Assembly: GCA_002269645.1 (NCBI GenBank) | Contig: NIVC01002235.1 | Location: forward strand, 124,001-188,000 | Source: Macrostomum lignano | Taxonomy: Eukaryota | DNA: 64,000 nucleotides | Direction of reading: 5' to 3' | Part shown: piece after piece, positions 6,501 through 43,300 of the stretch | Layout: each line of letters starts with the position of its first letter | How positions within the stretch are numbered: the stretch's first letter is position 1 | Notes under the pieces: model-generated | Told to the model about the DNA's origin: nothing | The model's input: only the letters and a program-made list of their open reading frames with translations | The model's database searches: none | Position numbers and translations under genes: made by a program

Positions 6501-9500
6501 TTACAGTTCCATTTGGGCACACCTTACAGATCCATTTGGGCACATCTTACGGATCCATTTGGGCACACCTTACAGATCCATTTGGGCACATCTTACAGAT
6601 CCATTTGGGCACATCTTACGGATCCATTTGGGCACACCTCACAGATCCATTTGGGCACACCTCACAGATCCATTTGGCACAGCAATTTGTCAAGGTTGCA
6701 GTGTTCCTTAATGTGCACGAATCACTGAATATTAACGATTATAGTATAGTCAATTTTAACTGTCTTCTTTCCAGACAATTTTGAATCTTTTGGCGAAAAC
6801 GCGATCAAAATTGGTCAAGAATTGCAATCTCTAGAGCGTTATGGACAAACATACAAACCTTAGAGATTTAGTATATTTGGATTGGATAAAACCCTACCTG
6901 CTTAAAATAGTCGGTCATCTCGAAGTCGTTCGGTTGATTAGCCAGGTTGCTCTTCACCTCGCTGTACGTGTCGTTAATGATCGCCAGGAACATGTTGATC
7001 AGCACGAAAAACACGAAGAACACGTACAGGATGAAGTAGATTGGGCCCAGCACTCGGTGCGCGTTCTGCAGACTGGCGAAGTCAAAATCGCCCAGAATGA
7101 TGCGGAACAGCGTGAAAATGGCCTGCTGAAATTCTCTGAAGTCTTCAACTTTGGTGCCAAAGATCAGGTAGCCCAGCTGGGCGAAGGCGAAGAATACAAT
7201 GAAGAACATCACGGCGAAGCCCAGTAAGTCTTTAGCGCAGGCGCCCAGAGTTGAACTCAACTGCGTCATGGTCTTATTAAAGCTGATGTACTTGAAGATC
7301 TTCACCCAGGCGAAGAACACCGTGATAGCGATGGCCTGGTTAAACTGTTCCTGCCAAAAGCTGAGGAAGTCGAAGTCCGGATATTGAGTCTCGTCCTCCA
7401 GTAGTCTGGTGAGCTTGTTCCCAACGCTGATGGTTCGGTAGATATTGAAGGCGGCGCAGACCAGGGCAATTACAATCACGACAATGTCAAGCCAGTTCCA
7501 GAACGAGCTGAAATAAGCCAGCTTGTGCCGCTTGATCTCGATGATCTCTTCCACAATGTAGTAGCAGATGAACAGCATGAAGATGCACTCGCAGGCCAGT
7601 ACGAAATAGTCGATAGGTTCAACGTAGCGCAGAAGCTTTACAGTGCGAAACTCCCAAGAGGTGAAGCCGCCGCCAGTTGCCGGGAATTCAGCTATCAATT
7701 TGATCACGCAGAACAGGTTAATGTTAGCGTTGTACACTGTGAAGTCAATGAACACAGCCCTGGTAGCTCTGTCAATCCATAGGCCATGGAAGAGTTCATC
7801 AATTTTAGCAGTGGATTCTTCGCGGCTCCGGCCCAGATCGATGTAATATCCGCCGCCGTTGTACGTGGCGAGCTTGCCGGAGTAGCCGCGACCGTCTAGC
7901 TGTTGTTCGGTGCTGTAATTCCAAGCCGTCGAGTTCATGTAGCCGAACGGTTCGCGGCTCTCGGCGCTGCGGCTGTACATGGCGTAGCAGGCGCGGATGT
8001 TGGCGCGAAAATCTGTCGCGATCGAGCAGCTGTCGTTGCGGACTCGAACCTGGCGGACAGATTGCCATTTTTTGGGCAGCGTTAATAACTATCTATAATG
8101 TTTCTAATTTGTAATTTATAAAATGAGAATAATTTATTACGCCTGGCCTAATTTGACCAGATGTGCAACCGACAGCTCAGCCGCAGCTATTGCGTGGCGC
8201 ATCTGAAGGCTGCGTACGGCTGTTCAGTCCAAGGACTGGGGAGTCGCCACACGCAGCCTCAATTACCCCAGCTAATGCTGGCACCCATTTTACAGCTGGG
8301 TGAACTGAAGCAATGCAGAGTTCAGTGTCTTGCTCAAGGACACGAATTGTTCCGAGTGGGTCGAGACTCGAACTCCCGACCTTTCAGTAGTGAGTCCGAC
8401 ATCCGAACCACTAGGCTACATCCCTTACAACACAACCCTTTTAGCACACGTCCGCGCATAAATAAGGAAACTTGCTGCTCTGTTTTTAACTTATTTTATT
8501 GTTTTCCTTACTGATTTCACCAAAACCTAAGCGTCCACCATGAATAGGACTGTCAAGGGGGGCATGGCGTAGCCCAGTGGTCAAGCACGGCGCTCTGATG
8601 AGCCAGCGGCCCAGGCGTGATTCCAAGTGCAGTCACATTGACTTGGGGCTAAACTGGAATCTCGGCTTGGCTCTGCTCGTGCAATTAACGTCCTTGAGGG
8701 CCAACCCCCAAGGCACAGTGAAGTGTACATGCCTAACGATAAATAAAGTTAGGGCCGCTGTACACTCCTGTGTGTGTGTCTGTGGGTATGACTGCGTACG
8801 TATCCGCGGCAGTAATGCCTCTCGCTGGTTGTGAGACAATGTCGCTTAAAGTGCGCCAGGGTGCATTCCCGTTTGATCCATTGCCTCTCAGCAACTCCCG
8901 CTTAACCCTGTCATCTCTCAAAATTCCACATTGATTGATCAATCAAAATCAACAGCCAATTACCTGTCGCATCCTTGGCACGCCGAGCAGTTTGTTCTCA
9001 TAGTAGATGAAATTTCGCTCTCTCGGATCGGTCACATTGGCATTGTTATACCAGGTGTCCCAGTACAGGCCGGAGATCAGGGGGCCTTGGGCGAACTGAG
9101 GGTTTAATCGGGAAAAATATCATGCCTTGGGTATTTTTCATTTTTATTACTGTCATAGCGGTGTGCCAGGAAGCCGATCGCTCACCCCCCACCAGTCCGC
9201 GAAGTTCTTCACCGACGTAAAAGTGGCACCGCTGGCGGTTGGCGTGGTCAGGAACAGCGAGTTCATCACGAACGTGTAATAGTACATTGTTGACGAGGTC
9301 ATGCCGAAGGTCACTGGAATTATAAGTAGTTAATTTTACTTACTGAATTTTCCCTTGTTACACACTAAAAATGACTGTCACTGATTTGACTGTCACTGAT
9401 TTGACTGTCACTGATTTGACTGTCACTGATTTGACTGTCACTGATTTGACTGTCACTGATTGGACTGTCACTGATTTGACTGTCACTGATTTGACTGTCA

Positions 9501-15417: not shown

Positions 15418-16487
15418 TTAAACAGGTGTCGGGATCCTTAAACAGGTGCCAGGATGCTTAACCAGGTGTCAGGATGCTTAAACAGGTGTCAGGATGCTTA
15501 AACAGGTGTCAGGATGCTTAAACAGGTGTCAGGATGCTTAAATAGGTGTCAGGATGCTTAAACAGGTGTCAGGATCCTTAAACAGGTGTCAGGATGCTTA
15601 AACAGGTGTCAGGATGGTTAAACGAGTGTCAGGATGCTTAAACAGGTGTCAGGATGCTTAAACAGGTGTCAGGATCCTTAAACAGGTGTCAGGATGCTTA
15701 AACAGGTGTCATTAGGATCCTTAAACAGGTGTCAGGATGCTTAAACAGGTGTCTAGATGCTTAAACAGGTGTCAGGATGTTTAAACAGGTGTCAGGATGC
15801 TCAAAACAGGTGTCAGGATGCTTAACCAGGTGTCAGAATGCTTAAACAGGTGTCAGGATGCTTAAACAGGTGTCAGAATGGTTAAACAGGTGTCAGGATG
15901 CTTAAACAGGTGTCAGGATGCTTAAACAGGTGTCAGGATGGTTAAACGGGTGTCAGGATGCTTAAACAGGTGTCAGGATGCTTAAACAGGTGTCAGGATG
16001 CTTAAACAGGTGTCAGGATGCTTAAACAGGTGTCAGGATGGTTAAACGGGTGTCAGGATGCTGTAAACAGGTGTCAGGATGCTTAAACAGGTGTCAGGAT
16101 GGTTAAACGGGTGTCAGGATGCTGTAAACAGGTGTCAGGATGCTTAAACAGGTGTCAGGATGCTTAAACAAGTGTCAGGATGCTTAAACAGGTGTCATTA
16201 GGATCCTTAAACAGGTGTCAGGATGCTTAAACAGGTGTCAGGATGGTTAAACGGGTGTCAGGATGCTTAAACAGGTGTCAGGATGCTTAAACAGGTGTCA
16301 GGATGGTTAAACGGGTGTCAGGATGCCTAAACAGGTGTCAGGATGCTTAAACAGGTGTCAGGATCCTTAAACAGGTGTCAGGATGCTTAAACAGGTGTCA
16401 GGATGCTTAAACAGGTGTCAGGATGCTTAAACATGTGTCAGGACGCTTAAACAGGTGTCAGGACGCTTAAACAGGTGTCAGGACGCT
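15418..16487. repeat. 20-bp minisatellite (AAACAGGTGTCAGGATGCTT)n
   Basis: Tandem units ending about 90 bp upstream of the SLC7 ATG. Confidence 0.97.
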
Positions 16488-16577
16488 TGCCCAGAAGGTT
16501 GTGTGACCTCCGTTACGTTTAACTTAGCATCAGTAAAAATTATTACAATACTCAACTCGCCAGCTCAGACCGTCAGC

Positions 16578-19500
16578 ATGGCACTAGTCTACCAGATCAA
16601 GCTCCTAGCCAACATGCTGTCGCGAAAGAAGACTCTAGACGAAGCACACATGGAAGAGACTCAACTAAATCGCTGCCTAACAACTCTCGACCTCACCGCA
16701 CTGGGCGTCGGCTCGACCCTGGGCGCCGGTGTCTACGTGATCGCCGGCGAGGTCGCCCAGAAAGCCACCGGCCCAGCTGTGGTCGCGTCGTTCTTCATCG
16801 CGGCGTCTGCGTCAATCTTGGCTGGCCTGTGCTACGCAGAATTCGGCGCCAGAGTGCCCAAGTCGGGCTCCGCTTACGTCTACAGCTACGTGTCAGTTGG
16901 AGAACTGATGGCCTTCGTCATCGGCTGGAATCTCATCCTCGAGTACGTGATTGGAACCGCAAGCGTTGCTCGGGCTTGGTCGCAGAACTTTGACAGCCTA
17001 GTTGGTGGCAAGATTATTGACTTCTTCAAGGACTACATGAGCATATCGCTTCCTGGACTGGCCGATTATCCTGACCTGTTCGCACTGGGCATGGTGCTGC
17101 TTCTAACGGCTATCATTGCTATCGGGGTCAAGGAGTCCGCCTGGGTGACAAACATCTTCACTTTCATCAACCTGATTGTACTGGCTGTTGTGTTCGTTGC
17201 GGGATGCTTCTTGTCCAGCTTTGCTAACTGGAGCATCCGACCGGACTTGAACGGCACGGTTGTGTACCACAATGTCACGTACTCGGCCGATCAAGTTGGC
17301 GATGGCGGCTTTCTGCCGTTCGGTCTGCAGGGTGTTGTCTCCGGCGCTGGGACCTGCTTCTACGCGTTTGTGGGATTCGATGCGATTGCCACGACTGGAG
17401 AAGAGGTTCGTTAGTGAGTTCATTGAGTTGTTTTAATGAATGTTACATAGCTATGTACGCTAGCACACGATAGATCACACAGGGTGGACAGAAGCTTTGA
17501 CTTTCTCATTGTCAGACAGGCATGTACACGCTCTGTGCATTGAGAGTTTAACCTCATTGTTGAGAATCGTTAAAGCTTTGCGGGCGCCCCTGTCTCTTGG
17601 TTGGCGCCCCTGTCTCTTGGTGGGCGCCCCTGTCTCTTGGTGGGCGCCCCTGTCTCTTGGTGGGCGCCCCTGTCTCTTGGTGGGCGCCCCTGTCTCTTGG
17701 TGGGCGCCCCTGTCTCTTGGTGGGCGCCCCTGTCTCTTGGTGGGCGCCCCTGTCTCTTGGTTGGCGCCCCTGTCTCTTGGTTGGCGCCCCTGTCTCTTGT
17801 TTGGCGTCCCTGTCTCTTGGTTGGCACCCCTGTCTCTTGGTTGGCGCCCTTGTCTCTTGTTGGGCGCCCCTGTCTCTTGGTTGGCGCCCCTGTCTCTTGG
17901 TTGGCACCCCTACTCCTGCGTCCTAGGCCTAGGCCGGTTGAAAGTTGGGATCCTGCCATTTGTTGAGTACCATCTGTCCATTAGTTTTTGAGCAAAACTT
18001 TTGTAGAGACGATTGGGGCTCCTCTGCGTACGCCACTGTAACAATAGCTAGATGCAAAAAATCAAGAACTAAATTTTAAGTACTCTACTAAAATGTTAGT
18101 AGTAGAATACCAATATTGTTTTAAAATCAGCTCTTGATTAATCTATTTATAGGTGAAAAATCCTCAACGAGCTATCCCAATCAGCATCATTTTGAGTCTG
18201 TCAATTTGCTTCGTAGCCTACTGCGGCGTCAGTTCCGTTCTCACCTTGATGCAGCCGTACTTCGCTCTGGACCCGTTGGCGCCCCTGCCTCAAGCGTTCG
18301 CCGCTCACGGTTGGCTTGTTGCCAACTATTTCATCGCTGTTGGCGCCATCTGCGCCCTGTCCACTAGCCTGCTGGGAGCCATGTTCCCCTGCCCCGAGTG
18401 GTCTACGCCATGGCTAGCGATGGGTTGATCTTTCGCTTTCTATCTCGGGTTCATCCGCGTCTCGCTACTCCATTAATTGCCACCGTCCTGACGGGAGTCA
18501 TGGCCGGCGTCATGGCATGCATGTTCGAGCTGAAAGCACTGGTTGACATGATGTCTATCGGTACACTACTAGCTTACACTCTTGTAGCCCTGTCTGTGCT
18601 CATACTTCGCGGTAGTTGCGACGTTTTCAACAATCGAGCAGTGTCTGCTCCGAGTGAGACCCCTAGTGGAGAGCAGCAGGTTCTGGAAGAGCCCGTTGTT
18701 GCAGCGACAAGCTCAATGAAAACTGTACTGGTCGACGTTGAGGAAACCGACTTTGTTGAGCTCATTGAGTCTACCAGAGCAGATAAATTTACGCTTAAAT
18801 CCTATCTGAGCTGCTCATTCCGTAGAGGTGGCTACTCTGAGCCGAACAATCTGACTGAACAGGTCACTCGAGTCAACTCCGGCTTATTTATGATCTCAGC
18901 AGGTGTGTTGGCATTCGTACTTGAGCGGATGCCTAACCAACTGGGAGCTGGCAGGCCAGAAGCAGTGATCCCGGCATCCATTGCCTGCCTACTGTGTCTG
19001 TTAGCCATGATCAGTTTGGCCATGCAGCCGCAGAGTCGAAAACCAGTGGCTTTTAAGGTAATGCTATTTCATATGTCTTAAAGTGGTAAAGAAATTTATA
19101 AAGGGTTGACCTGATGCTCACAAATGCTATTCCTGTGTCGCTTTGTAGACCCTTTGTAAACCGCGGCCTTTTTAGAGGCAGGGGCCTGTGTGCACCCTGG
19201 CGCACTTTAAACGACATTGTCGCACAACCGGCGTGAGGCATTGCTGCCCATTCCGCCGACTCCCCTGAGCAGGCACACAAGCGCGCTGATACGTACGCAG
19301 TCATACGCACAGGCACACACTCACACAGGAGTGTACAGCGGCCCTAACTTTATTTATCGTTAGGCATGTACACTTCACTGTGCCTTGGGGGTTGGCCGTC
19401 ATAAGAGCGTTAATTGCACGAGCAGAGCCAAGCCGAGATTAGCTAGCCCCAAATTAATCTGACAGCACATGGAATCGAGCCTGGGCTGCTGGCTACAGCC

Positions 19501-30233: not shown

Positions 30234-30453
30234 GCAATGCGTACAATACAGGTCTAAATGAAGACAGGGTTTTAGAACCTGCAGAACTATCTATAATACT
30301 GTAGAATGAACTGGACAGACAGATATACGTGGACACGCACCTCAAGATACATCCAGACAAAAGTAGACAGACGGACCGACAGAACTAGATGCACATCAAG
30401 ATATAGGGAAGGATAGGTAGATAGGTGGACAGATGGATAATAGACAGATGATG

Positions 30454-31041
<588 letters not shown>

Positions 31042-32254
31042 ATTCTGATTCTGATTGGCATAAACCAGTCACTGTTTACTTATAAAATGTAGAAAGTGGT
31101 CTGAACATGACCACTGGTGTGTGCCGCATAACATGTGCCGCTGAGAAGCACAGTACGCTATTCTAGCAAACCTTGCTGATAGTTAAAGTTACAGACTAGG
31201 GCTGGGCCTTGTCTTGTGCAAGCAGTATCAAATAAAGTGTCATTCAGTGACGGCCTTCAATTCAGTGGGCCATGCACCAGTGGGCTGACCAGAGGGCTTC
31301 AGTTCAGTGGTCCGTCAATGGGCCACATCAGGCCACCTGTGGGCTGATCAGTGGGCCTCTGAGAGGGCCGCACTTTGGCCGCAGTGCCAGAAAATTCTTT
31401 GGCGAAATCTTTGCAATTTATTGTCTTAACACAAGTTTGGAAGAAACGAAAAACAGATGAATAAAAATGTAGATAAATGTTTTCAAAAATTGGCAGCGTG
31501 GGAGGAATGTATAAATATATTTTTGGCTATGATTTTTAGAGAATCAAAAAGGCCACCATAGTCGATCGCGAACACCATGCAATTTTGATAGATTAGTCAT
31601 ATATAATATTTTAGAACATGCAACGTGCCATTTTAATTCAGCGAGTTAATGAAAAAAAGTTGATCAAAAATTTCCGATGCTTAACGCATGAAATTTGGTA
31701 TTGGAAGGATTCGAAAAAATGAAAGTAACAATGCTTTCATTAATTTGAAGAAAAGTGAAAAAAATTACTTAGATTTCAAACCTCAAGAAACGTAAAACTT
31801 GCTGAAAAAATATTGTTTGCTTTGGACGTTAGCTTTGTTTAATATGATCTGTGTAGGGCCTAGATTGATTTCATAATAAAGACACGACTCCCTATACGTC
31901 ACGAATCTATATTCACCTAACTGATCACATTCATCTAACTATGAATTATATACATCCTACATGTTCATCATTCAAACTTACTCCTAGCTACATATAACAT
32001 CAAGCCAGAGGTCATCCACTGGTAGCATCTTAGAAACCACTTGGCTTAAGTAAACTTAAAATCAGACAAATAAACTCTCTTCTTTGGGGAATAGGTCATC
32101 ATGTTACTAACAGTAGCTTATTCAAAAAATTACGAGCTCGTAGTAAAGTTTGATACTTTCAGAAGCAATTCTTTAAAAATTTCCATCTTACCATGCTGGA
32201 TATTGTACTTTAGTAAAGTTTCTGCGAGTGTACATATTTGATGCGTTCAAAAAA

Positions 32255-35200
32255 TCAAAACTTTGGAAAGAAGAGCAGCTTTCGTAGTGTAGACTTATAG
32301 CACGGTATCTGCCAGTTATCAGTCTCATTAAAAACATCTGATGTCACCTTGGGCAGTAAATGTGTGAACTCTACTGGCGAATCCGGACTGTCATCGCTGT
32401 AAGCCTCAAGAACTGAGTCTTTGAACTTTTGAATGAACACGGTACCTGTGTTGCGATTACGATCTGACATGTCACACTCAACGACGCTGTAGATATAAAG
32501 CGAGTCCTCATTCTTACAGGAATTTCCAAGACCGTGGCAAACTGGGAGTGTTATCTCCCGTGGGACGTGACGACAGGCCTGTGTAATGAAAATCTTCGGT
32601 TTTCCTTCCAGCCATTTGTGAATTTGAATGCGCCCGAAAAGTTTGTCTAATTTGACTTCAGCTCCGTCTGACGAGTACACGGAGCCTAGGAAACCATGCG
32701 ACATGATGCACAGCAAGAACGCAGTGCAATTTTTGTACTCGTCCTCCGTGAATAATATTCTCAGCTCTCTGACCTCATCGAAAAAGGCTCTGCCCACGTC
32801 TCGTAACAGATGATACTTAAAACCCAGCTTTTGCAGACTCAGGGGCAAGCAGTCGAGCTCATCGTCTCTCTCAGCCCCGACGCGTGTTTGAAGTCGTGCA
32901 GGATCGTTAAATATGATATTGTTGATCACAATGGCCAATCGATCATCTGAGTTGCCAACGTCGTATCGTTGCCTTTGAGTAGCTGTCGCCCCACCAGAAG
33001 ATGCTGAGCCACCCGCAGTTCCCTGCGCAGATCCGCCAGCAGAACCTCCAGCTGAGGCGCCAACACCACCTGCTGAGTTGTCCGGGTCCTCTGGATTTTC
33101 ATGATCCAAATAGACTTGGCCTTGATTGGTTTGATTCGTCAGTTGTCTAATGCTGAAAGTTTTTAAATCGTCGTAAATGTACATTCAAAAAAACTTTATT
33201 TTTGGCAAGTCTTATTTAAGCATCACAAAACTCACCACTCTCGAATAAAAGCTGCACACTCCCAATGCTTGCCCAGCTCCGCCCACTGCAGGCTTGTTCT
33301 CTTGTACTCTCCAACAACTTCCCAATATTGTAGGCTATCGATGCGCTCACTCAGAACCTTCAAAACCTCCTGACAGCCCTGTCGAGCGGCCCAAATAACT
33401 GGTGTATTACCAAATCGATCAGCAGGTCTGATGCTGGATCCGGAGTCAAGCAATATTTTCACCACTTTAGCGAAGTTATTTTTCGCTGCATGCGTCAAAG
33501 CGGTGTAGCCAAGCCGATCCTGTAAAAATTGTTGTGTCTCCAGCTTGTTTGCGTATTTTAAGTGTGTAATTGCAATTTTCTCGTGAACTCACCTCGAGAT
33601 TGAGATCTGCATCCATCTGTAGCAGCTCTGAAACTACTTCATCATGGCCAGAGTGAGCTGCGAGCATCAAAGGCGTCTGTCGCATGTTATCGGGCCTGTT
33701 CGTCTCAATCTGCAGTACGTTTTCGTCCAGAATTCGCCGAAACACTTTCACCGGTTGCAGGTGGCCGAGAAAGCTCGCCCAACTCAGGGCGGATCTGCCT
33801 GATACGTCGCAAATCGAGACGACTGCTGGGGCCTTTTCTAATAGCTTCTCGACTATGTCGCTTCTGTTCTTCTTGGCAGCAATTACCAGCAGCGTCTCCT
33901 TAAATGGCGGCAGCTGAATACTTAAGTCCGATGAGCTGTGAACGTGACGATTAAGATCTTCATCACTCCAATCTTGTGGTCTCCTGTAAAATGAACAAAT
34001 GATGCTACAGAGATAATTGTAAAATGTACCTTTGATCCGTGTTATTTTCATTGAAAAAAATACTTTAGTCACTAACCTTCTTGCAGGTTTCGTCGTGTAC
34101 TCATTCAGTACAAGGTTCTTTAGCTTATTTCTCAAACGTTCAACATTATCCCAGTCTCTTGTGTCGAATGCCAGACGATTTTCGGTTAGTATAGTTTCCA
34201 TTTTGGCTAGACAGAACTGTACTTGCTTCTTAGAGCTGCTGTAATGAGCGATGGTCATGTGCTCTTCAAAGTCAGGGTACTCCTGTAATTGCGAAAACCA
34301 GGCATCAATTTCGCTGTTTGTAACTCCTAACAGCTCGGCTCTCAGGCTCCACGCGAGGCAGCAGAAGTTCACGTACAGATGAGGGCTTCCCGTCCGAGAT
34401 TTTCGAATAACAAGCAGGTTTCTGGTAAATTCTGGCAGGCATGAGAAATCCGCAACTTCTGAAGGACAGGGAAGACAGAATCGCCATGCCCAATCAGTGT
34501 CCTGAAACACTTGATGCATCTTTTCAATTTGATCTGGCTTCCAGCTTCGCATCACTGTGTGGTTGTCGAGTCCTTTCAGCACTTCTTTTGCGGCTTCTAA
34601 GTCTTCAACTTTATGTAGCAGAAGAATCTTCAAACAAGCTACTGAAGTCTTGCACCAAGTCAGGTTCTCTAGAGGCTTTAAGAGTGCCATGGCATCATCA
34701 GCCTTGTCCGAAAACTGTTCAAAGTAGCTACGAACCACATCGTACAGCTTTCCGAATGTAGAGACGCTGATATCTGGGTTTCCTTCAGTCTGCAACGGGT
34801 TCAAGGCTTGCAGTGGAACCATTGTAAATGGATGAAAATAGAAATTTTCATTCTGCAGCGGCTTCAGCTGGTGCTGCAGCCTTTTTACGACAGCTTCAGC
34901 TACGTTAGTTGTGCAAAGTCGCATGAGCTGGTCTCGAACTCTCGATTTCGTTTGCTGAAAGTCGCCACCAACACCAGCATTGGTGAAGTACAGAGGGCTG
35001 TCCGGGAGAAAAAAACTCGGCATACATATGTCCGGATCGGGATTGGAGTCGATGAACTCGAGTAGTTTGTCGAGCGACTCGTTTAAAAGCCAAATTAAGT
35101 TGTCTGGCCTCCAAATTTGTTCATCAAAACCGTGCTTATGAAGTAAGTAAAGCAGCAATGTCTTGGCGTGGTACGTCTTGAGACCCGCTGTAGCGACTTG

Positions 35201-35905
35201 ACCAGATACAAATATTTTGAGTACGAACTTCATGAGGATGTAAAGTTGACCTTGACAATCAGTTAAACTCCTCATGATGGCTTTTTCCAGAAAGCTGAAA
35301 CTAACCCGAAGTTCGTGGTCAGCAGTGGGTCTGGCTGTTCGAACCAGATGCAAAGGCGATACGTTTGCTTCAAAGCAGCCACGAATAACTGTCTGCTCAG
35401 CAATCGAGTTGGAGCAGCATGGATTGGCAAAGCAGAAGCTCTCAGCCGGCTTGGAGCCGCATTCTGCAGCAGTCATAGCTGGTTCACTTCCTGGAAGAGT
35501 TTTAAAATACGCAGCGCGTCACTACATGTAGTTAGTAAAATAAAATATAAAAATTAATTTAAGTCAGAGTCTCTCCTTCTCTGTGGCCTTACCAATGGTA
35601 GCATCCACTTGGACATAACCTTGTTTAACTTCAAATCTGGTTTTCTTCACCGCTTTGCAGCTGCATCCATTGAGTAAATGCATTGGCTCTCGAGGCCCGA
35701 CAAGACATGTCCAATTCATGTCACAATCATCCGACGCTTGGCCATTTAGCTGGGTCAGACTGGAACCCCATCCCTCAGCGAAGCTTCCTACCAAGTGAAT
35801 GTATTCATTGTTCTCGTGAATTTGCCTGACGATATCCTCCATCGAGTCCGCCATTTTTTGCTGCAGTTTAGCTCTCTGCCAAGTGAATCCAGCTTCTTTC
35901 AGCAT
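32255..35905 (-). CDS. Mab-21/cGAS-like domain + ankyrin repeats + caspase fusion protein, 1099 aa
   Basis: Exons 35905-35593, 35490-34077, 33983-33593, 33519-33236, 33152-32255; GT-AG, phases 1/2/0/2, total 3300 nt. Mab-21: LVGSFAEGWG..DDCDMN, LRVSFSFLEKAIMRSL, LYILMKFVLK, GLKTYHAKTLLLYLL, CMPSFFLPD. About six ANK repeats (GRSALSWA, QTPLMLAA, GYTALTHAA, GNTPVIWAA). Caspase: LAIVINN, TRVGAERD, LCIMSHGFLG, KPKIFITQACRH, SDRNRNTGTVFIQ. Confidence 0.85.
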
Positions 35906-36304
35906 CTTGTGAAGAGCAATGCTTTTTTAGGCGTCAGCTTCCATTCTAAAATTGAGGAATTTTTCATTCAACAAATGGACAACTATAAGGAATCTGTTAG
36001 TTACAAATAAATTAAGGGAAGCAAGCTGTGCAGTTAGGACAGATTGGGACGCAGCATTGACTTAAGTATCTATTCTGAAGCTCTGAAAATTGGAAATGCT
36101 TCTAGTAAATTTGAATAGCAGAACAGTCCTATCTAGAAAATTTTAGGATCTTAATTTGGCCCCCATATATAAATGTTAGCTATCTAGTGTACCGATCAAT
36201 TTGTGCTCGTACCTACCTATATGGCTCACTATATTAAGCCAAGCACTTACATGCATTGTTGCAGATAATAAAAATCGACTACACCTACCCTAATAGGGCA
36301 TAAA

Positions 36305-36734: not shown

Positions 36735-37700
36735 TTACCCGTCAAACAGTCGCACGATTTGATAATGTCCGAGTTTCTCGGCCAACTGTATACTGGTGAG
36801 ACCATCCTTGTCTTTGTGCAGTGCATTCGCACCGTGGTCAAGCAGCACTTTTGCCGCTCTAACCTGGCCTGTCATGCAAGCCCGAGTGAGAGCCGTTCTG
36901 CCATCATCATCTGTGACGCTGTCAAGGGAGACTTCTATTTCCAGTAGGTGTTGGATTAGTCTGTGCTGACCAGCATCTGCAGCAAGCATCAGCAAGTCGC
37001 CCAGCGGTGCTCTGTCCTCATTTTCTTCTAAAACCTTTTGCAGCAGAGCTTTCGACGTTTCTATGAGGCCGCCTGATACGCAGCGAGCCAAAATCTTCCA
37101 GGCGTCCGATGACGATTCAATAACGTCCAATTTACCTTGCAGAGTTGCTTTTATCGCTGATTTACCGCCAATAATAAGTCTTTTCTCTCCTAGTAGCAAG
37201 TTGAGATCAATGCGGAACTTTTTAAATTTTTCGATCTCAACAGGTGCTGCTTGAAGCTTATTATCTGATGGATTGTAAAAACTGCATTTTAGCACTGGAA
37301 AATGTTTTTTTGATGCAAAACCAGACAAATTTCTCAAATCCAAATTCACATTTTTATCGCTGAAGACGTCAAATTCGGTTAGGTTTGTCATGCGACTGCT
37401 GGGAAAAAACATTTGATTCTTATCGATTATTGACTCGCCTAACCAGTCAATAATTCTTAACTTCTCAATAAAGAGAAATTTGGCGTCAAATATATCCCGC
37501 CAAGTTCGGTAAAATACTCGTAGGAAGTCGGCAAAATTCGGTGGCAGATTCAGTAAAACGAAATCTTTTCTTTTTTTATCCTTTTGAGACTCGATGCAAT
37601 ACTTGTTACGTGTTTTAGTCTCATGCCGAAACACTTCTGTCTGCAAATCTTGGAATTTCCGGCGATCGAATTCTTGATTTGAAACGTTTTCAAAGCTCAT
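36735..37700 (-). CDS. Ankyrin-repeat ORF with an uncharacterised N-terminal region; possible 5' exon of the Mab-21-caspase gene
   Basis: ATG at 37700 (MSFENVSNQEF). Three C-terminal ANK repeats (DLLMLAADAGQ, GRTALTRACMTG, GLTSIQLAEKLGH). Donor GG|gtaatt at 36739/36738 matches the phase of acceptor ttttag|A at 35945. Confidence 0.75.
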   Translation of the reverse strand: MSFENVSNQEFDRRKFQDLQTEVFRHETKTRNKYCIESQKDKKRKDFVLLNLPPNFADFLRVFYRTWRDIFDAKFLFIEKLRIIDWLGESIIDKNQMFFPSSRMTNLTEFDVFSDKNVNLDLRNLSGFASKKHFPVLKCSFYNPSDNKLQAAPVEIEKFKKFRIDLNLLLGEKRLIIGGKSAIKATLQGKLDVIESSSDAWKILARCVSGGLIETSKALLQKVLEENEDRAPLGDLLMLAADAGQHRLIQHLLEIEVSLDSVTDDDGRTALTRACMTGQVRAAKVLLDHGANALHKDKDGLTSIQLAEKLGHYQIVRLFDG

Positions 37701-40318: not shown

Positions 40319-43300
40319 TTGGGGTGCTTTCACAAGGTTGAAATTTCACAACGTCGAGAAGCAAATTATTGCACAAGGTCGAAATTTCACAACGTCGAAA
40401 ACTCGAAAATCAGCCACTTTCATAAGGTCAAAATTTCATAACATCGAAACTCAAATAGCTATTAAAACAAAAATATATAATAATTGATGGGTTCGGCCTT
40501 TTTAAGCCTATAGCTTCGGGTCTCAGAATTCAGAAATGAATCACTTACAACAACAACAACAGAGTACGCTGTCAGTTCGCAAAAGCAGCGTCAGATGGCG
40601 CGCTTCGAAGCTTGGGCGCGAACAAAGGCCGCACCGCCGGCAGAGTCCGGGGCGCCGGCGTCAGCCAGCAGACAGTCGACGTAGCGCCGAGTCCTCGCCT
40701 GTCCCCGCCGGTAGGGTGCCTGCAACGTAAGTAGCAGCACCTCCTGCACCGGCTCCGGACAGTAGGCCTCGGCGCGGATGACGTGGCCTGCCAGCTGGAG
40801 TCGCCGACGGCGCAGCAGATCGCTAGGACGGGCCAGGCCGGCGCGATGATAGAGCGCCGTGTTGGTGACTCGCTCGTTGCCGATCTTGAAGGCGGCGCGC
40901 AGCAGGCCAGCGTGCGCCGCGTCGACTTGAGCCTCGAGCGAGTCTGTCAGCGTCCAGGTCTCGGCGTTGTATAACAGGACGGTCTCGATCACCGCCTGGA
41001 ACAGCGCCGCTCTCTGGCGGTCCGGTAGGGCCTCGGACTGCAGGACTGACCTTATAGAACGAAAGGCAGCCCAGGCAAGTCCTCGGCGACGCCGCAGATC
41101 CTCGCGGACGTCGGGAACCAGACCGCCGAGGTAGACGAACTGCTGACATCTTGGAAGCTCACTCGCCTGTCCGTCAGCGCCTCGGCAGAAGATTGCAGCC
41201 TCGGTGTCGTCCGGCACGCATAGCACGACGGTCTTCTGCGTGTTGACCACCAGGCCGACGCTCGCCGCAACGGCAACCAGCCTATCCAGCTGTCGATGGG
41301 CGCCCTCGACGGTCGAGGACAGCAGGGCGAGGTCATCGGCGTAGCCAAGCAAGCTGAGCCGTCTCTCCGGTTGGCGTCGACCCACGCGTCGCCGCAGCAG
41401 GAAGCCGTCGTCATTGGAAGGCAGAGCAGTCCGTAGCACCCAGTCAAGCACCAGAATAAATAGGAACGGCGCTAGCGTATCTCCCTGGAGCACCCCGGAG
41501 GATGTCTCGAAGAAATCCGATAGGCCGTCCGGTGTTGAGACAGCAGCCGTCGTGCCGTGGTACAGCGCCATGACAGCAGAAATCAGCAGCTCTGGCACGT
41601 TGTACGCACGGAGCACCTCTGGGAGCGCGTCCCTCACGACCGAGTCGAAGGCCTTCCTGAAATCGACGAAGATCAGGATCACGGTCAACTGGCGGATGCG
41701 CGCCTCCTCGATGACTCGCCGAAGAGCCAGGATCTGCGTCACTGTGCCGCGATGGGGCCGGAATCCGTTCTGCTCAGGCCGCAGGTACGGGTCCAGCACA
41801 GGCTGTAACCGCGATAGCAGCATGCGGTTGAACAGCTTCGCGGCGCAGGACTGTAGGCAGATGCCTCGATGCTCCTCGAGCTTGGTGGTGGCCGGCTTCT
41901 TTGGAATGGCGACGATGTGCGCCGCGGTCCATTCGTTTGGCGCCACCTCACCGGAAAGCACGCGGTTCATCACCCTGGCGACCTCAGTGGCCACGTAGTG
42001 GATCCGCAGCGCCTCGGTGGGCACCTCGTCCGGACCAAGCGCTTTGCCGCCCGGCGACTGCCGAGCGAACTTCACAACGTTGGCTGTGCTGACTGGGGCA
42101 ACATTGAAGCTCTCCTCTGCCGGCAACGGCGAGTCGAACGCCGTCGCGAGCGAAACTGGCGAGGTCGGCAACGTGGCGCTGCCCGCCGAGCTGCTGCTGC
42201 GCTGGCCCAATTGGATCTTCCGGGTGGCGCCGGGGACCATGAGGCTCACCAGCACCGAGCCCCAGCCGTACCAGAGGGCACGCTTCGGGTCGGGACGCTG
42301 AACTGCCGCACTCTCAAGGCCACATGGCGGAGAGGGCTGCTGGCGAGGCTAGCGCTCGACCTCAGCTGTGATGTCATCGCACTACAGGAGGTGTCTATCA
42401 GAGCCGACCCCGGACTTCACTGTGAGGACCTGGGCGCCGGTTGGACACTCTGGTACACCTCAGCGGATGAGCGAGGCCGTGGAGGAGTTGGAGCGCTGAT
42501 CGGACCGAGGCTGCAGCAGAGCTGTCGCTGCGTCTCCCTGTCTTCTCGGCTGCTTCGGGTCGACGTCCGACTTCGCGGCCGGAACGCCCGCCTGTTCTGC
42601 GCGTACGCGCCGCCTGCTACCCGCTCCGATGAGGCTCAGGCCTTCTTCGAGCAACTCTCGGTGCGGGTGGAGGAGATGGCGCAACGTGACACAGTGGTCA
42701 TTCTCGGAGACCTGAACGCAGTTCTGCGTAGGTCCGAGCGATCGCTGTTCGTGACAGCGCGCGAGAACGGCAACACCGGAGCGCTAGAGGACTTCCTGGA
42801 GAGACAGGATATGGTGTCGGCCAACACCAGATTCCGCCAAGTCACCGGGCAGGCTCGCGACCTTCGTGGGCTGCAAGCGGAGGCGGCGGAACGCGCGCGG
42901 CCGGAACGCTACGCGGAGGCTGGCACAGCTCGACCACGTGCTTGTGCGCTTTCGTGAGCGCCGCCGCGTCACCAACTGCCGCATCATTACGCCGCTGGCT
43001 CTGCGGTCCGACCATCGGCTGCTCATCTGCGACCTTCGGCTTCGGGACCCGCTCTACCGTCCGCCAAAGCGGCCACCGCGGCGCTACTACCGCGCGCTCA
43101 GGGACGCCGAGACGCGACGTCGCTTTGCCGGTGCCTTTGTCACTGCGCTGGGCGACAAGCGTGGAGGAGCCGAGTACGCGGAGGTGAGCGCTGCAGTTCG
43201 AGCCGCTGCGGAGCATGCAGTCCCGCTGATGCGACCGGCCCAGCGCGGGCAGCCGGTCTGGCAGGACGACCCCGCGATCGACGAAGCGAGGGAAGATCTG

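Follow-up and report, generated by a model that had tools for sequence, protein, structure and literature searches.

In a 64,000-nt window of the Macrostomum lignano genome (contig NIVC01002235.1, positions 124,001 to 188,000, assembly Mlig_3_7), a minus-strand gene at window positions 32255-35905 encodes, in a single chain, a cGAS/Mab21-like domain, a helical domain, ankyrin (ANK) repeats, a linker and a p20/p10 caspase. We consider it probable that the product is a long-prodomain caspase whose prodomain, made up of a pseudo-cGAS-like receptor (pseudo-cGLR), the helical domain and the ANK repeats, drives activation by proximity, that the nucleotidyltransferase (NTase) site has decayed, and that the copy in the window is a recent duplicate. 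An earlier sequence-only reading of the window had proposed the single-chain architecture, and it is real: it is present in a transcript-derived annotation and recurs in a paralog at 34% identity (P0037). A sister copy of the gene (PAA80948.1, 1444 aa, contig NIVC01000557.1) is 97% identical in DNA to the window copy.

The annotated gene span on the contig has the same coordinates as the 32255-35905 model, and the locus that we fetched for the public protein (L004) is, as its reverse complement, identical to window positions 22255-45905. Five minus-strand exons (35905-35593, 35490-34077, 33983-33593, 33519-33236 and 33152-32255), each bounded by GT..AG, join in phase into 3300 nt encoding 1099 aa and a stop codon, and the product is PAA59752.1 (P0033; BOX15_Mlig012150g1; UniProt A0A267EG68) residue for residue. 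UniProt titles the entry "Caspase family p20 domain-containing protein", and in GenBank it is an unnamed hypothetical protein. GenBank's annotation of the assembly rests on RNA-seq and transcript assemblies only (StringTie/TACO plus a de novo transcriptome), with transcripts cut at trans-splice and poly(A) sites and open reading frames (ORFs) called by TransDecoder (PMC5730564); the five-exon model of the sequence-only reading therefore coincides with a transcript-derived one. The features of the gene, in the order of transcription, are as follows.

36739..37700, minus strand: upstream exon, an ORF open from the ATG at 37700, about 320 aa, matching the N-termini of the public models P0001, P0019 and P0174
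35593..35945, minus strand: exon 1, with the acceptor AG at 35947-35946 and the annotated coding sequence starting at ATG 35905; encodes the spine helix, G40-S41 and the beta-strand with D62-M-N64
35927..35929, minus strand: in-frame TAA stop codon, TCA (Ser) in the sister copy; in the alignment with the sister locus (L002), GCC TAA AAA vs GTT TCA AAA
35714-35716, minus strand: codon of N64, which replaces cGAS D227
34077..35490, minus strand: exon 2, remainder of the cGAS/Mab21-like domain, up to aa 335 (34799), then the helical/beta domain, aa 336-575
35438-35440, minus strand: codon of S122, which replaces cGAS D319
aa 204-269, within exon 2, minus strand: Pfam match to Mab-21_C
33984..34076, minus strand: intron 2, 93 nt, in frame and stop-free; position conserved in P0037 (L003)
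33593..33983, minus strand: exon 3, linker and ANK repeats 1-3
33236..33519, minus strand: exon 4, ANK repeats 4-6; a TGA follows directly after the donor if the intron is left unspliced
32945..33152, minus strand: Gly/Ser/Ala-rich acidic linker, aa 801-870, isoelectric point (pI) 4.4
32255..32944, minus strand: caspase p20/p10 (Peptidase_C14) and stop codon, aa 871-1099, by Pfam and by alignment to caspase-3
32882-32884, 32696-32698, 32573-32575 and 32459-32461, minus strand: caspase codons R891, H953, C994 and R1032, respectively

The domains are joined both in the reading frame and in the exon structure. ORF 33476-35476 runs straight through intron 2, so that the cGLR-like/helical part and the first ANK repeats lie in one continuous ORF whether or not this intron is spliced, and the public model P0019 likewise continues from the helical domain into the ANK repeats of exon 3. 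Intron 3 splits an ankyrin repeat, the Pfam Ank_2 match at aa 670-737 running across the boundary of exons 3 and 4 at aa 706/707. A phase-2 intron separates the last ANK repeat from the caspase exon and falls at the same residue in P0037 and in a stand-alone ANK-caspase gene, P0030 (L001), and the other two of the three introns compared are also common to the window gene and P0037. The latter protein (PAA93319.1, 2111 aa) is colinear with aa 2-1098 of the window protein at 33.6% identity (E 2e-160), and its Pfam order of ANK, Mab-21_C (24.7 bits, over threshold), ANK and Peptidase_C14 is that of the window protein. The same join with the same introns is found in three separately annotated genes, one of them at only 34% identity. 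When we compared the window and sister copies over their 1099 shared codons, we counted 24.5 synonymous and 29.5 nonsynonymous changes (omega 0.34; binomial p = 2e-4 vs. neutrality), and the caspase domain alone gave an omega of 0.21 (p = 6e-4). By these codon comparisons, in which the counts of change are small, the values show that at least one of the two copy lineages has been under purifying selection.

A Pfam search, which the sequence-only reading had proposed as a check on its domain assignments, gave a divided result: Peptidase_C14 and Ank were assigned in the window protein, and Mab-21_C (PF20266) scored 21.9 bits, under its gathering cutoff of 24.1. There was no PF03281 match in the protein, and a single-sequence search of the PDB with aa 1-586 returned nothing relevant. 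Comparison of the family alignment with a cGAS/cGLR alignment in hhalign gave a match across both lobes (probability 99.96%, E 3.8e-38, 283 columns), pairing family positions 1-321 with human cGAS residues 164-522, and the only PDB matches of the family profile were cGAS (E 4.6e-4), the coral Sp-cGLR1 (8gjy; 3.3e-3) and MAB21L1 (0.063). An AlphaFold model of the cGAS-like domain (the N-terminal ~340 aa) reached a pLDDT of 86.3 and a pTM of 0.88, and a Foldseek search with this model placed cGAS chains at every one of ranks 1-46 (best E 1.9e-9, TM 0.50-0.58, typically near 0.55 across ~350 columns), with MAB21L1 and MiD51 also among the structural matches. The good model rests on a more diverse alignment of 23 sequences; an earlier 13-sequence alignment had left the NTase core at pLDDT < 50 and the Foldseek matches weak (E 0.02 or worse). 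Profile and structure evidence together place the domain in the Mab-21 superfamily, and we conclude that, as modeled, it is a true and complete bilobal cGAS/Mab21 fold.

Residues 1-586 fall into a large family, with 87 representatives at 50% identity and E <= 1e-30; all 10 of the 10 that were checked by name are from M. lignano. ANK-cGLR members such as PAA86972.1 and PAA45980.1 were catalogued as cGLRs and screened biochemically by Li et al. 2023 (PMC9980059). Following the cGAS fold is a family-specific helical/beta domain (aa 336-586; 34077-34798 plus 33953-33983) with a conserved DWAWRFCLPC motif, for which we found no Pfam family and no PDB fold beyond TPR-like noise. Three WormBase/UniProt M. 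lignano models (P0075, P0096 and P0028) join a fragment of the cGLR family to Delta/EGF, homeodomain or Ig domains, and probably reflect chimeric gene prediction and not real architectures.

The claim of a Mab-21/cGLR domain held for the fold and failed for a competent receptor. In the hhalign register, for which the human cGAS sequence was verified against PDB 5v8o, G40-S41 correspond to cGAS G212-S213, D62 to E225, N64 to D227 and S122 to D319, such that the GS loop and the first acidic residue are kept and two of the three catalytic residues are lost. The active-site motif by which Li et al. 2023 recognize cGLRs is h[QT]GS X8-20 [DE]h[DE]h X50-90 h[DE]h (PMC9980059); the window protein reads V-G40-S41, 20 residues, D62-M-N64-W, and S122 at the third position. 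Because Asn64 and Ser122 occupy the D227 and D319 positions, the domain departs from the published motif and is probably no synthase. Among the family domains, 71 of 90 keep GS|DxD|D, and every caspase-fused protein (the window copy, the sister copy, P0037, and P0001, a truncated model of a further fusion copy) has DxN and no third Asp, the second and third acidic positions being occupied by Asn and by Ser or Thr, respectively. The caspase-fused domain, judged by these residues, most probably makes no nucleotide messenger. As aligned, the degenerate site fits the idea of the sequence-only reading that no diffusible nucleotide is involved, yet it removes the reading of the domain as a cGAS-like enzyme.

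The C-terminal half resembles the flatworm-type "ANK caspase", with about six ANK repeats, what is probably a flexible linker, and a p20/p10 caspase. The repeats (Pfam Ank/Ank_2, aa ~597-800, E 6e-27) and the Gly/Ser/Ala linker had been described from the sequence and are present. Peptidase_C14 (PF00656) matched aa 872-1094 over profile positions 2-232 of 233 (E 2.7e-25; 89.9 bits vs. a cutoff of 21.4), and the best PDB match of the domain was caspase-3 (E 1.1e-14). In the alignment to caspase-3, R891, H953 (in SHG), Q992-A-C994 and R1032 correspond to R64, H121, Q161-A-C163 and R207, which confirms the catalytic His and Cys and the Arg/Gln/Arg of the Asp pocket named in the sequence-only reading, as well as its placement of the catalytic Cys codon at 32573-32575. 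The His-Cys dyad and the S1-pocket Arg/Gln/Arg are invariant in three M. lignano paralogs (the window protein, P0037 and P0030), and by these residues the caspase looks catalytically competent. ANK caspases, first noted in Schistosoma by Lee et al. 2014 as cited in PMC11463336, are described there as a flatworm-specific lineage that has the DED caspases as its sister group and is thought to be initiator-like (Krasovec et al. 2024). The ANK prodomain that characterizes them is found here, with ANK repeats at aa ~597-800 followed by the linker and the caspase at aa 871-1099.

The stand-alone ANK plus caspase gene P0030 (BOX15_Mlig004809g2) lies at L001 9136-11659 on M. lignano contig NIVC01000713.1. 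We found no cGLR-like coding sequence in the 10 kb upstream of it, which rules out that P0030 is merely a truncated model of a fusion. A word-indexed homolog search with the caspase domain, both as a single sequence and as a 3-sequence profile, recovered only P0030 and distant caspase-9-type proteins.

The 1099-aa ORF is incomplete compared with its relatives. Public models of close copies (P0001, P0019 and P0174) begin ~345 aa further upstream and run on into the cGLR-like exon, and in the window the corresponding upstream exon encodes a fast-evolving N-terminal region and then ANK repeats at aa 237-318 (Pfam Ank_2, E 2e-14). Its donor, GG|GTAATT at 36739/36738 in phase 2, splices to 35945. 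A C-to-A change made the TAA at 35927-35929, so that the window copy lacks the ~345-aa N-terminal ankyrin region; 8 codons (24 nt) further on, a CTG of the sister copy is the ATG at 35905. Judging from this alignment, the 1099-aa ORF represents the 3' portion of an ancestral gene that was longer and whose intact form has 1444 aa, and the window copy is a recent duplicate that may be non-functional and would at best encode the 1099-aa form without the N-terminal ankyrin region. The transcript of the 1099-aa ORF probably also carries a 327-codon upstream ORF; reinitiation, spliced leader (SL) trans-splicing at the same acceptor, or use of an alternative acceptor at 35923-35922 are conceivable routes to the 1099-aa protein.

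The AG at 35923-35922 is a candidate in-frame acceptor (GG|C ATT GCT) that skips the TAA; it is preceded by A (AAG), and the other acceptors of the gene are CAG, or TAG at 35947-35946. Relative to L002 6001-6942, the upstream exon (36739-37700) is strongly diverged in its N-terminal ~120 aa despite 97% identity elsewhere, only its nt 358-963 aligning (88% identity, 25 gaps), which suggests very fast evolution of the 5' end or a rearrangement.

Long-prodomain caspases are activated by proximity-induced dimerization, and inactive Mab21-fold proteins such as MAB21L1 and MiD51 serve as scaffolds or adaptors. The N-terminal half would derive from the ankyrin-fused cGAS-like receptors, of which M. 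lignano has a large family. Its pseudo-cGLR and helical domain may, together with the ANK repeats, act as a binding and oligomerization prodomain. Once this prodomain engaged a ligand or partner, two caspase domains would be drawn into contact and activated by induced proximity, in the manner of the DED prodomain of caspase-8 or the CARD prodomain of caspase-9, with sensing and proteolysis placed in one chain. The ligand-driven clustering put forward in the sequence-only reading might thus switch on the caspase. The strict tie between loss of NTase catalysis and fusion to a caspase suggests a shift of output, away from a diffusible nucleotide and onto the attached protease. Candidates for what is sensed are a pathogen ligand, the nucleotide products of the paralogs, and the paralogs themselves.

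Several observations weigh against a proximity-activated caspase encoded by the window copy. The cGLR-like domain is slightly acidic (pI 6.1 vs. a family median of 8.3, 9.1 in human cGAS and 8.0 in P0037), which, as weak evidence, makes nucleic-acid sensing doubtful. The catalytic pentapeptide is QACRH, not QACxG, and the intersubunit linker is short and has no obvious Asp cleavage site; these two features would be compatible with activation by dimerization and not by cleavage. Multi-mapping reads from the 97%-identical sister copy may underlie the RNA-seq support for the gene model at this locus, and the long upstream ORF could block translation of the 1099-aa ORF or trigger decay of the mRNA. 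The window protein and P0037 did not form an exclusive clade when a neighbor-joining tree was built from the cGLR-like domain, and the fusion may have arisen once or more than once.

Two alternatives concern the gene itself. One is that adjoining ANK-cGLR and ANK-caspase genes were merged by annotation or assembly and that no fused protein is made. Most members of the cGLR-like family do stop right after the helical domain, near the end of exon 2, the stand-alone P0030 exists, a TGA directly follows the exon 4 donor, and polycistronic precursors make up ~7% of M. lignano transcript units (PMC5730564). A merger of this kind would not account for the lack of a stop codon from the helical domain through to the ANK repeats, where intron 2 is open and in frame, for the division of one ANK repeat by intron 3, or for the recurrence of the join and its introns in three separately annotated genes including the 34%-identity one, and the TBONE annotation pipeline cuts polycistronic units at trans-splice sites (PMC5730564); we regard it as highly improbable. 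A more serious contender, though one that we still hold to be on the unlikely side, is that the fusion is genuine and the window copy is a dying duplicate, in effect a pseudogene, with function residing in PAA80948.1 and PAA93319.1. The sister copy is coding where the nonsense change falls, the assembly of the DV1 line contains large duplicated blocks that are at least 95% identical (PMC5730564), and of 12 polarizable amino-acid differences in aa 1-416 (counted by eye), 8 are derived in the window copy vs. 4 in the sister. Against this stand the 1099 downstream codons free of stops and frameshifts, the new ATG 8 codons past the stop, the overall omega of 0.34, the in-frame acceptor at 35923-35922 that could skip the stop, and the common use of SL trans-splicing in M. 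lignano.

Two further alternatives concern what the cGAS-like domain does. Taken literally, the sequence-only reading holds that a working cGAS-like receptor senses double-stranded RNA or DNA, clusters, and activates the attached caspase. The complete fold, the retained GS loop and first acidic residue, and the oligomerization of cGAS on DNA all agree with it, as does the treatment of close paralogs with intact motifs as cGLRs by Li et al. 2023 (PMC9980059). Asn64 and Ser122 at the D227 and D319 positions, the resulting departure from the published motif, the pI of 6.1 vs. 9.1 in human cGAS, and our failure to identify a Zn-thumb or other nucleic-acid-binding feature in the domain speak against it, and we judge it very unlikely. 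Alternatively, the dead domain may be a receptor for, or partner of, the ~70 intact ANK-cGLR paralogs, binding their product or hetero-oligomerizing with them, and the fusion would then be their protease effector arm. The extensive expansion, within this one genome, of paralogs with an intact motif and the strict association of catalytic loss with caspase fusion are consistent with this, and NTase-fold pseudo-enzymes that bind nucleotides are known (MiD51 with ADP and MAB21L1 with CTP, according to PDB titles); the nucleotide pocket has, however, lost metal ligands, and we think this version quite unlikely. A broader form, in which the fusions are the effector arm of the ANK-cGLRs and the prodomain recognizes a ligand, a nucleotide or the paralogs and switches on the caspase as a single-chain route that bypasses STING, we would also call unlikely.

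The sequence-only reading knew of no description of this architecture. We likewise found no published description of it, and in this sense it appears new; the proteins are already in GenBank and UniProt, and both halves are of described kinds. In the literature searched we found no description of a fusion of a Mab21/cGAS fold with a caspase, and the covered portion of the caspase survey does not report one (PMC11463336); nor did literature searches on Macrostomum together with cGLR or STING turn up such a description. In the alphabetical fused-domain table of PMC9980059, as far as its "Mab-21 superfamily" rows, the terms "CASc" and "caspase" are absent, and the three fusion accessions were not found in the covered part of its supplementary tables, which makes their absence from that data set likely. 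What appears new is the triple fusion; its halves, ANK-cGLRs and flatworm ANK-caspases, are known, and it has so far been found in one species, with a highly duplicated genome.

Among known systems, the platyhelminth ANK caspases share the placement of ANK repeats directly N-terminal to a p20/p10 caspase, whereas the M. lignano prodomain adds the cGAS/Mab21 fold and the helical domain and occurs in a macrostomid with a free-living habit. Li et al. 2023 (PMC9980059) report fusions of cGLRs with ANK, TPR and death domains and with further cGLRs; the ANK-fused animal cGLRs have the same bilobal cGAS fold, and the fusion described here differs from them in its degenerate catalytic motif and attached caspase. 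MAB21L1/2 and MiD49/MiD51 likewise lack the full catalytic triad and use a cGAS-like fold as a scaffold or adaptor, but none is fused to a protease, and their roles are in development or mitochondrial fission. Annelid caspases with TIR, Z-binding, ROC or kinase prodomains are similar in that an immune or signaling domain replaces DED or CARD; no Mab21/cGAS-like prodomain is among these non-canonical caspases in the covered portion of the survey (PMC11463336). The CBASS, type III CRISPR and Thoeris systems with caspase-like, CHAT or Lon proteases (Kaur et al. 2020, PMC7159879) are conceptually alike in coupling an NTase-family sensor to a caspase-fold protease. Those prokaryotic modules combine an active NTase, a diffusible nucleotide and a separate protease (PMC7159879), in contrast to the dead NTase and covalent fusion seen here, and we saw no sign of common descent of the NTase-protease coupling.

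Elsewhere in the window, a long perfect tandem repeat with a 12-nt unit at 30287-31092, ~1.2 kb downstream of the stop codon of the fusion gene, gives rise to 220-260-aa "ACLP" and "GRQA" ORFs on both strands. Retroelement remains lie at 40591-42957, ~3 kb upstream of the upstream exon, with ORFs for a reverse transcriptase (RVT_1, E 8e-29, minus strand) and an Exo_endo_phos domain (plus strand). Neighboring coding exons encode a polycystin-type cation channel (6868-7980, minus strand; PKD_channel, E 3e-77) and an amino-acid permease (16455-17414, plus strand; E 4e-23).

Should the fused protein be produced and active, it would represent a new class of prodomain for initiator-type caspases and the first case that we could find of a cGAS-fold domain covalently wired to a death protease in an animal, and it would mean that reuse of the cGLR scaffold in a non-enzymatic role, as sensor or adaptor, is possible. 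M. lignano is amenable to transgenesis and RNA interference, and the fusion would offer a tractable entry to the role of the ~70-member ANK-cGLR expansion. Most flatworms have no cGLRs beyond Mab21-like proteins, according to the paper that defined cGLRs (PMC9980059), and ANK caspases have been reported only in parasitic flatworms (PMC11463336); the M. lignano genes mean that ANK-caspases are not confined to parasitic species. With an inactive fusion or a decaying copy, the finding would amount to a lineage-specific curiosity of a highly duplicated genome. If instead the fusions do serve the ANK-cGLRs as their protease arm, they would constitute a functional analogue of bacterial nucleotide-signal/protease defense, in the form of an animal pathway from pattern recognition to cell death.

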